Both the position numbers and the translations under genes were made by a program. From positions 62,001 through 126,000 of the IMG/VR virus record IMGVR_UViG_3300042261_002385: a stretch of 64,000 bases of DNA; one strand, written 5' to 3'. Position 1 is the stretch's first letter. Each line of letters begins with the position of its first letter. This document shows, piece after piece, positions 6,548-13,336 of the stretch. A model generated the notes under the pieces. The model was given only the letters and a program-made list of their open reading frames with translations, ran no database searches and was not told the origin of the DNA.

Positions 6548-6620
6548 AGCGAGAGATGAGGTTCGAACTCACGACCCCCACCTTGGCAAGGTGGCGCTCT
6601 ACCAGCTGAGCTACTCTCGC
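6548..6620 (-). tRNA. tRNA-Gly (GCC)
   Basis: CCACC-TTGCCAA-GGTGG arm, U73. Confidence 0.93.
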
Positions 6621-6630
6621 TTATTTGATG

Positions 6631-6706
6631 TGGACCAGATGGGAATCGAACCCACCACACCTACCTTGCAAGGGTAAGTCGCCGAAGCCTTGGAACATGC
6701 TAGCCC
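6631..6706 (-). tRNA. tRNA-Ala (TGC)
   Basis: G3:U70 pair; TTACC-CTTGCAA-GGTAG arm; atypical D arm. Confidence 0.88.
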
Positions 6707-6710
6707 GTAG

Positions 6711-6782: not shown

Positions 6783-6793
6783 ATGTATTTCTG

Positions 6794-6874
6794 TCGGCAA
6801 GGTGGGATTCGAACCCACGTTTTCAACTTCCCGCTACGTGTATAGAATGTATAAGATTCCAACGGTACTTGCCG
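6794..6874 (-). tRNA. Non-canonical tRNA-like RNA with a TAT (Ile AUA) anticodon-like loop
   Basis: Perfect CGGCAAG/CTTGCCG acceptor and T arm; GGAAT-CTTATAC-ATTCT hairpin sits where the D arm should be. Confidence 0.6.
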
Positions 6875-6875
6875 A

Positions 6876-6909
6876 AATAAAAAAACCCAGTCCTTTTGAG
6901 ACTGGGTTT
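6876..6909 (-). terminator. Intrinsic terminator (attenuator 2)
   Basis: AAACCCAGTCT-CAAAA-GGACTGGGTTT plus U tract, directly upstream of cluster 2. Confidence 0.88.
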
Positions 6910-6930
6910 ATAAATATGTAAAGTCAAATA

Positions 6931-7014
6931 TTACATAACATAACTCAGTCTATAGACTTGACGCCCCGCGCCTGTCGCTATAAATCCAACTGATATGTTT
7001 GTAAAATTTTTCAT
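6931..7014 (-). CDS. Leader peptide 2, MKNFTNISVGFIATGAGRQVYRLSYVM
   Basis: ATA, GGA, ATA, GCG, GGC, GCG, GGG control codons; AGACTGAGTT antiterminator. Confidence 0.78.
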   Translation of the reverse strand: MKNFTNISVGFIATGAGRQVYRLSYVM

Positions 7015-7293: not shown

Positions 7294-7323
7294 AAAAAAA
7301 CCCAATCTTTTCAGACTGGGTTT
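7294..7323 (-). terminator. Intrinsic terminator (attenuator 3)
   Basis: AAACCCAGTCT-GAAA-AGATTGGGTTT plus U tract. Confidence 0.88.
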
Positions 7324-12517: not shown

Positions 12518-12603
12518 CGGAGAACAGAGGAATTGAACCCCACACAAATGAACGTGCAACTCGCTTAGCAGGCGGTCCTAATCACCAGATTAGTTTATTC
12601 TCC
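12518..12603 (-). tRNA. tRNA-Ser (GCT), 8/4 fold
   Basis: CGC-CTGCTAA-GCG; CTAATC-TGGT-GATTAG D arm; G73. Confidence 0.82.
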
Positions 12604-12609
12604 ATTTAG

Positions 12610-12693
12610 CGGAAGAAGTAGGTGTCGATCCCAATACCTTTCAGTACCCACAGTTTTCAAGACTGGGTTGCAGGCCGCTGCAATTCATCTTCC
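12610..12693 (-). tRNA. tRNA-Ser (TGA), 8/4 fold
   Basis: CAGT-CTTGAAA-ACTG; TTGCAG-CGGC-CTGCAA D arm; G73. Confidence 0.82.
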
Positions 12694-12780: not shown

Positions 12781-12908
12781 CGGGGATGGTTGGACTCGAA
12801 CCAACGACCTTATAATTTCAAAATATACGAAGTAACTCTTTCAATCAACACTCTTACGAGGTAAAGTTTCAAAAGAGATAGTTTTCTCTACCACTGAGCT
12901 AAATCCCC
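12781..12908 (-). ncRNA. 128-nt tRNA-like RNA with a large structured insertion in the anticodon domain
   Basis: Near-canonical acceptor, D arm (GCTCAGTGGTAGAG) and T arm (GTTGG-TTCGAGT-CCAAC) flank about 55 extra nt. Confidence 0.7.
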
Positions 12909-13258: not shown

Positions 13259-13329
13259 CACGTCGCCTAGGAATTGAACCCAGCCATCGAGGTTTTGGAG
13301 ACCTGACCGACACCTTGTCTGTGCGACGT
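13259..13329 (-). tRNA. tRNA-Trp (CCA), short D arm
   Basis: AGGT-CTCCAAA-ACCT arm, G73. Confidence 0.82.
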
Positions 13330-13336
13330 ATGTTTG

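Follow-up and report, generated by a model that had tools for sequence, protein, structure and literature searches.

A tRNA-like gene from a very large phage, with a core that is probably a non-circular permutation of the tRNA core

Few features in biology are as conserved as the order in which the arms of tRNA follow one another. The exceptions of which we know are of two kinds: tRNAs from which arms have been deleted, as in mitochondria, and permuted genes in which the normal order is restored by processing. For RNA at large, Eckert and Weinberg stated in 2023 that no natural non-circular permutation had been known before their own ribozyme cases (PMC10085705). In the circularly permuted tRNA genes of Cyanidioschyzon merolae (Soma; cited in PMC10085705), the 3′ half lies before the 5′ half, and a canonical tRNA is regained through processing. 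UAU, the anticodon that concerns us here, is a frequent one among the allo-tRNAs (Mukai et al. 2017, PMC5389517).

Here we describe an 81-nt element on the minus strand of a phage genome (6874..6794). All positions refer to the window, by which we mean the whole stretch of 64,000 nucleotides that was analysed. It covers bases 62001-126000 of the virus record IMGVR_UViG_3300042261_002385, which is 436,265 bp long and estimated to be 95% complete. Reading of the strand and comparison with homologues show that the element is genuine and conserved. Judging from sequence, it is most likely the gene for a phage tRNA-Ile with the anticodon UAU, for the codon AUA, and with a permuted core. The phage has a GC content of 31.4%, the standard genetic code fits it, and its DNA is present in lake and other freshwater metagenomes; among the phage records of GenBank, those closest to it come from two uncultured phages, 634 and 642 kb in size.

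What is the architecture of the element? The acceptor stem is a perfect 7-bp helix in which the 5′ strand CGGCAAG (6868..6874) pairs with CTTGCCG (6795-6801). The discriminator at 6794 is A, as it is in every Ile-type member of the family, and CCA is not encoded, A73 being followed by CAG. The T arm (6802..6818) is likewise perfect, with GTGGG-TTCGAAT-CCCAC (6818-6802) forming a 5-bp stem and the loop UUCGAAU. The unusual order lies between these two arms. The acceptor strand leads into U8, A9 and C10 (6865..6867), of which C10 may be the counterpart of position 22, and then into CGT (6862..6864), the 5′-located strand of a 3-bp D-stem-like helix, which replaces canonical 23-25 and pairs with 6837-6839. 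The position-26 counterpart U6861 and the anticodon arm occupy 6844..6861 (stem 6860-6856/6848-6844), and the hairpin GGAAT-CTTATAC-ATTCT (6860-6844) presents, in the loop CUUAUAC (6855-6849), U33, the anticodon UAU (6853-6851) and A37. The AUAC linker that follows (6840..6843) stands in place of 44-47 with three nucleotides bulged; A6843 pairs with U6861 in the manner of 26-44, and this pair is U-A in 26 of the 26 rows of the first homologue alignment. Across the wider family the linker varies (mutual information is 0.75 between the counterpart of position 26 and the column next to it), and it may act as the substitute for 44-47. The chain then continues into ACG (6837..6839), the 3′-located strand of the D-stem-like helix, which replaces canonical 10-12, and into a displaced D loop, U-A-G-C-G-G-G-A-A (6828..6836), in which A6835 corresponds to A14, G6834 to R15, G6832-G6831 to G18G19 and G6830 to position 20. 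The last segment before the T arm (6819..6827) consists of the linker GUUGAAAA and C6819, the counterpart of Y48 and partner of G6834; a mini hairpin in this region, GUU-GAA-AAC, is invariant in the Ile type and is not kept in Arg-type relatives.

Standard searches pass over this gene. ARAGORN finds 22 tRNAs in the window, the element not among them, Rfam at gathering thresholds makes no call on it, and the tRNA model RF00005 (gathering threshold 29 bits) gives no match even at E<=10. The only Rfam matches around the element at E<=10 are an opposite-strand plastid-UTR and an 18-bit tmRNA. We rejected the tmRNA reading (6801-6990, 18.2 bits against a threshold of 47) because the acceptor stem forms locally and covaries, and a match to the YrlA tRNA-like domain was set aside as lying elsewhere (6568-6682) and below threshold. 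Folded as a single sequence, the element is unexceptional (-23 kcal/mol, z -1.68), and 11 of 200 shuffles fold as well.

Homologues were sought by several routes. An exact 16-mer scan returned 88 stretches, mostly chance matches, from which blastn identified ten loci with genuine homologues, nine from the scan together with L001. One of these ten loci is in a 642-kb phage that also carries a canonical tRNA-Ile(UAU). Orthology with the canonical tRNA-Ile(UAU) genes of LR756502 and LR745206 was considered and rejected, the alignment giving no close relation; LR756502 holds a true homologue at L001:1516-1595 besides its canonical gene. A pattern that fixed non-anticodon positions only, and was thus anticodon-agnostic, matched 31 viral contigs with 26 distinct sequences, all with UAU save a single GAU, likewise an Ile anticodon. 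These 26 distinct homologues were aligned with MAFFT, and the covariance model built from the alignment scores the element at 104.2 bits (E 1.8e-29); the next best match in the 436-kb genome reaches 30.9 bits, so that the element is the sole strong match there. A second scan in which the 3′ half alone was fixed added 52 further loci, and the covariance model yields 72 matches of at least 35 bits, 69 of them distinct, from 50 sources. The anticodons of the 69 distinct members are UAU (33), GAU (19), UCU (7), UCG (7) and ACG (3), and a further member at 32.8 bits (L050:5432-5507) has CAU. Permuted tRNAs with an Arg anticodon (UCU, UCG, ACG) occur at L125, L134, L154, L133, L094, L166, L174, L057, L101, L151 and L168, and up to five permuted tRNAs are found at some loci.

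The class was found in dozens of contigs from uncultured phages, and many of these contigs belong to very large phages. All genes of the class lie inside phage tRNA clusters, on the strand of the cluster and often beside other Ile tRNAs. ARAGORN overlaps 5 of the 71 class genes outside the window, each with wrong boundaries. No cultured phage with the element was found by blastn against 50,697 GenBank phage records, among which LR756502 alone, itself uncultured, matched. A single pattern match was obtained among 185,579 species genomes of cellular organisms, on a contig of an archaeal metagenome-assembled genome (MAG). This contig (L177, CAZOXV010000004.1) is a 19.5-kb piece of a Methanosarcinales MAG with a permuted tRNA-Ile within a tRNA cluster; it is probably a phage contig mis-binned into the archaeal MAG, because its tRNA gene order matches that of the viral locus L104.

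Comparative evidence supports the secondary structure very strongly. The original prediction, made from the sequence of the window, had recognised the perfect acceptor and T arms, which are read directly on the minus strand, and had nested the anticodon-like hairpin inside another helix, a topology that proved right. It had, however, built that outer helix from CCGTT and AGCGG. We counted pairs for the two rival structures on the MAFFT alignment of the 26 distinct homologues: in the CCGTT/AGCGG helix, pair 12-43 fails in 9/26 sequences and pair 13-41 in 16/26, whereas the structure in which CGT (6864-6862) pairs with its true partner ACG (6839-6837) has 99.3% of its cells paired. In the CGT/ACG helix, pair 12-37 is GC in 14 and AU in 12 sequences and pair 13-36 is GC in 13, UA in 10 and AU in 1, which amounts to 12 and 11 double compensatory changes with 2 unpaired cells in total. 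RNAalifold, given the unfitted MAFFT alignment, independently predicts exactly the same structure. The region of the tiny hairpin, which had been assigned to the normal anticodon position, is better read as the displaced D loop and linker. The covariance-model search that the prediction had suggested did find homologues, 69 of them distinct, with covarying stems and in part with other anticodons, and in their alignment all four helices covary. Double compensatory changes are present at all seven pairs of the acceptor stem (98.3% of cells paired); the three pairs of the D-stem-like helix (95.7% of cells paired) and the five pairs of the anticodon stem covary without exception, as do four of the five pairs of the T stem (97.1% of cells paired). 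For the whole structure 96.2% of the cells are paired and 516 are double compensatory, values that 0 of 500 shuffles reach, and slid controls all fall to about 40% paired.

Does the displaced segment behave as a D loop? In canonical tRNA, R15 and Y48 form the Levitt pair; A14, which pairs with U8, comes just before R15, and G18G19 follow. In the class described here, the 3′ strand of the D-stem-like helix is followed by an invariant U-A, by a purine and then by (N)YGG. That purine, the R15 counterpart (6834), and the pyrimidine just 5′ of the T stem, the Y48 counterpart (6819), are G-C in 50 members and A-U in 19, with 0 exceptions. Their mutual information of 0.85 bits equals the entropy of each column, which is the maximum, while the next best partner gives 0.34; the 14 column pairs with higher values are all Watson-Crick pairs of the model. 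Both the G-C and the A-U states are found within the GAU, UCU, UCG and ACG groups, and the covariation is therefore not a single inherited change. The counterparts of U8 and A14 are invariant (69/69), and GG is present in all members. The nucleotide after GG, at the position-20 counterpart, is A in 17/17 members with Arg anticodons and U or G in 50/52 Ile members, A being found in 2/52 of the latter; A20 is among the major identity elements of ArgRS in bacteria. Ile-type bodies carry UAU or GAU only and always A73, and the anticodon loops have U33 in 68/69 and A37 in 69/69 members. The R15-Y48 covariation, the conserved U8, A14 and GG and the behaviour of position 20 thus lead us to conclude that the 3′ segment functions as a D loop. 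We also note that at the position-20 counterpart itself (window 6830, plus-strand C>A) contigs from X15 and X16, two runs labelled RNA-Seq of which X16 is probably DNA, show G to U on the tRNA strand, the same G/U alternation that is found across the family.

We propose that the core of the element would be a permutation of the tRNA core, and a non-circular one because the ends are unchanged. The canonical order is D-stem 5′ strand, D loop, D-stem 3′ strand, position 26, anticodon arm and variable loop. The order in the element would be, in its first part, U8 A9, C10 C11 N N (the counterparts of 22-25), U (26), the anticodon arm and A-U-A-N (44-47), and, in its second part, N N G U (10-13), A14 R15 ..G18 G19.. 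(the D loop), an 8-nt linker, Y48 and the T stem. After U8-A9 the chain would enter the segment that in ordinary tRNAs makes up the D stem's 3′ strand and would pass directly on into the anticodon arm; it would then return through the short linker into the normal 5′ strand, and only at that point would the D loop, with A14, R15 and G18G19, be formed, to be connected to the T stem by a 9-nt linker that ends in Y48. Threaded in this way, the D stem and the anticodon stem become one continuous hairpin. In the known tRNA structure, D-stem strand 10-13 has the anticodon stem's 3′ strand stacked directly beneath it, and strand 22-25 continues without a break into 26-27. Given this stacking, the new wiring would seal one nick of the coaxial stack and open the top of the D stem, the D loop now leading to Y48. 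The contacts U8-A14, R15-Y48 and G18G19 with the T loop should all still be able to form, and the predicted three-dimensional fold would be the L shape. The D stem of the element has 3 bp and a 13-22 mismatch, as in class II tRNAs; with no D-arm hairpin separating position 9 from the anticodon arm, the element is not a canonical cloverleaf.

The codon usage of the phage fits a need for such a tRNA. ATA makes up 26.3 per 1000 codons, 35% of the Ile codons, and none of the 28 tRNAs that ARAGORN finds in the genome has the anticodon UAU. If one counts the tRNAs whose position 34 is U or A (inosine), ARAGORN provides decoders for 11 A-ending sense-codon groups, and UCA and GCA are covered only by genes that we read by eye (window 12690..12610 and 6709..6625); AUA is the one A-ending sense codon then left without a canonical decoder. 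One of the two tRNA(CAU) genes of the genome could be a tRNA-Ile2 modified by host TilS. In most loci of the class the permuted tRNA is the only tRNA with its anticodon, and a canonical tRNA(UAU) occurs in the same locus, as far as these partial loci extend, for 2 of the 32 UAU members. In L001 and L094, a canonical tRNA-Ile(UAU) and a permuted one are both present, so the permuted tRNA is not always the sole decoder of AUA. No IleRS, TilS or CCA-adding enzyme encoded by the phage genome scored above the cut-off, and host enzymes would therefore be used.

The element lies in a same-strand cluster; followed the way it would be transcribed, this cluster consists of Met, Glu, Tyr, a terminator-like hairpin, the element, Gly-UCC, an odd tRNA-like gene and Gly-GCC. 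The terminator-like hairpin with its U tract (6877..6909, minus strand) ends 2-3 nt before the 5′ end of the tRNA and is outside it; hairpin and element together fold strongly (z -4.4). Within the tRNA cluster, near-identical hairpins of this kind (AAACCCAGTCT..GGGTTTTTTTATTT) are found at 6877-6909 and 7298-7323, both on the minus strand, and the arrangement of hairpin followed by element recurs in L066, L098, L108 and L007/L051. No sigma-70-like promoter was found on the strand of the element, and transcription may proceed by read-through of the hairpin or from a phage-specific promoter. The element is present in metatranscriptome assemblies from lake and marine samples, one contig being identical over 6792-6888; the four runs concerned are labelled RNA-Seq (one is probably DNA) and show presence only, carry-over of DNA and related phages being possible sources. 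The flanking ORFs give a match to an EEP-family nuclease/phosphatase and a weak methyltransferase match, nothing more.

What, then, does the element do? What the sequences establish is its secondary structure, covariation like that of R15-Y48, conservation of the tertiary nucleotides, an association of anticodon with body type and a setting in tRNA operons. From these sequence data we consider it likely that the element is a working phage elongator tRNA-Ile(UAU) with a permuted core that reads AUA and is charged by the host. It would be transcribed together with the neighbouring tRNAs, its ends would be processed and CCA added by host enzymes, host IleRS would charge it and EF-Tu would deliver it, and it would decode the AUA codons that this AT-rich phage uses heavily. 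The original prediction of a tRNA-like RNA with rearranged topology, possibly a true AUA decoder, is thus supported, apart from the wrongly chosen helix partner; the grounds are the 69 covarying homologues, the tertiary signature, the fact that no other UAU tRNA was found and the frequency of ATA (26/1000 codons). Two ATA codons in a leader, which had been cited as a hint of a decoder or a decoy, have no bearing that we could find, and the suggested alternative of a decoy for nucleases specific to tRNA-Ile2 is weakened, since the same architecture also occurs with GAU and with three Arg anticodons accompanied by A20.

A broader form of this last idea is that the element is a mimic that does not decode, serving as a decoy or sponge for a host nuclease, modifying enzyme or synthetase or in some other non-translational role. 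The coexistence with a canonical tRNA-Ile(UAU) in L001 and L094 would suit a mimic, as would the known counteraction of tRNA-cleaving defences by phage tRNAs (PMC10264068, PMC11555353). Yet a decoy would not need the features that the class retains, namely five anticodons for two amino acids with matching identity features (A73 for Ile, A20 for Arg), the full 7/5 acceptor-T helix of the EF-Tu type, U33 and a purine at 37, nor would it need to be the only tRNA with its anticodon in most loci, and we regard a mimic as unlikely. Still less probable, in our judgment, is a working tRNA that is D-armless in the mitochondrial sense, with an extended anticodon stem, a floppy connector, no canonical core and hence a permutation that is only formal. 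The secondary structure taken by itself, three helices and an 18-nt connector, would fit such a tRNA; what speaks against it is the perfect R15-Y48-like covariation in 69 sequences, the invariance of U8, A14 and GG in the right order and spacing, and an A20 that tracks Arg identity, all of them elements that mitochondrial D-armless tRNAs have lost.

Could the element instead be a precursor from which a canonical cloverleaf is made by cutting and rejoining or by editing, in the way known for red algae and their circularly permuted tRNA genes? RNA repair enzymes are often encoded by large phages, but both ends of the element already form the acceptor stem, its junction sequences show the conservation expected of a mature RNA, and a bulge-helix-bulge motif was not seen. 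We also went through intron, splicing and circularisation routes to a cloverleaf by inspection and rejected them, as no single excision or circularisation restores the canonical order; a precursor of this kind strikes us as very improbable. To the idea that the element is a tRNA pseudogene in decay, or resembles a tRNA by chance, we give practically no credence: that standard finders make no call and that the single-sequence fold has a weak z-score might have suggested it, but 69 distinct homologues, compensatory changes in every helix, invariant nucleotides of the loops and of the tertiary core and a score of 104 bits refute it.

If, as we favour, the element is a working tRNA, why should its core be rewired? 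Evasion of tRNA-targeting host factors may be the reason, an attractive one in view of the published work on phage tRNAs and tRNA-cleaving defences (PMC10264068, PMC11555353, PMC12445682, PMC13056530). We offer, as a tentative conjecture that we think is more probably wrong than right, that the class consists of active Ile and Arg tRNAs of large phages whose non-circular permutation has been selected to hide them from host factors that act on the D-arm side, such as defence nucleases and modification enzymes, while leaving them acceptable to synthetases, EF-Tu and the ribosome.

Other tRNA-like genes of the window are odd in other ways, all of them on the minus strand. A second gene that ARAGORN misses (6625-6709) has the acceptor GGGCTAG/CTGGTCC, which includes G3-U70, the identity pair of AlaRS, and a normal T arm; it has a 6-bp stem with the loop CUUGCAA (anticodon UGC), an odd 19-nt region in place of the D arm and a 1-nt variable region. 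It is probably a non-canonical tRNA-Ala. L093 has a canonical Ala(UGC) at the equivalent place, and the sole Rfam match of the window gene is tRNA-Sec, at 19 bits. The tRNA-Ile(GAU) at 2206-2290 is built in a class-II-like way: its D arm, which has a 3-bp stem, is normal, and its variable arm (GTGA-GAAA-TCAC) is long. Class I is where tRNAs for Ile normally belong. Similar genes are found at L050:5122-5205, L057:651-735, L101:12149-12233 and L142:6526-6610 and recur beside many permuted tRNAs, and the window copy is the second-best match of the covariance model (30.9 bits); the class-II-like genes may be evolutionary relatives of the permuted tRNAs. In a 69-nt tRNA-like sequence (1801-1869) that receives no call from ARAGORN or Rfam, the acceptor stem, D arm and T arm are present, but the place of the anticodon arm is taken by a mere short hairpin whose loop has 3 nt. 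A tRNA-like gene at 12789-12908, with no tRNA-finder call, is normal in its acceptor, D and T arms; its anticodon region holds an insertion of ~45 nt, which may be an intron. ARAGORN also misses a Ser(UGA)-like gene (12610-12690) and a Ser(GCU)-like gene (12518-12604), both with long variable arms, the latter matching Rfam tRNA-Sec at 47.1 bits, just at threshold, as well as a Trp(CCA)-like gene whose anticodon stem is irregular (13262-13333). Outside the window, ARAGORN calls a tRNA with a four-base anticodon (agta) at G000:C1:37118-37204, adjoining a tRNA-Met(CAU).

Should our reading be correct, the L-shaped fold of tRNA would be reachable in nature through another topology, and phage tRNAs might have a new route of escape from tRNA-targeting immunity. 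A blind spot of annotation would also be exposed, as standard tRNA finders almost never call the class; given the 5/71 overlap with ARAGORN, tRNA counts of large phages and analyses of codon supply are biased, notably for AUA, AGA and CGA. The class might furthermore give scaffolds for orthogonal translation.

Finally, how does the element compare with the systems described so far? No earlier description of its architecture was found in a full-text search of a literature collection with few subscription journals, and a 2020 review of non-canonical tRNAs (PMC7609411) does not mention it. With the D-armless mitochondrial tRNAs, such as tRNA-Ser(AGY) (PMC7609411), the element shares the lack of a hairpin D arm and an anticodon helix in effect extended by pairing of the two connectors with each other; those tRNAs, however, are shortened and have lost the elbow elements, whereas the element is 81 nt long and has a displaced D loop with A14, R15 and GG. 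Like the element, the allo-tRNAs (PMC5389517) are non-canonical tRNAs out of metagenomes and phages, but they are of the 8/4 or 9/3 type with long V arms and arms in their normal order, in contrast to its 7/5 type without a long V arm. The permuted tRNA genes of C. merolae also depart from the textbook order of tRNA parts; in the element, by contrast, the termini are canonical, their ends pairing as the acceptor stem, and the mature RNA itself would be rewired. In the permuted ribozymes (PMC10085705), as in the element, internal parts are reordered while the ends stay in place and three-dimensional contacts are presumably kept, the difference being that those are self-cleaving ribozymes and the element is a tRNA. 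Canonical tRNA-Ile(UAU) and tRNA-Ile(GAU) of bacteria and phages (RF00005) share with it the 7-bp acceptor stem, the 5-bp T stem, the TTCRANY loop, A73, the setting in tRNA operons, the 5-bp anticodon stem with a 7-nt loop, U33 and A37, as well as U8, A14, R15-Y48 and G18G19, for which it has counterparts; it differs from them in that the D strands, the D loop and the anticodon arm are reordered and the hairpin-type D arm is gone.
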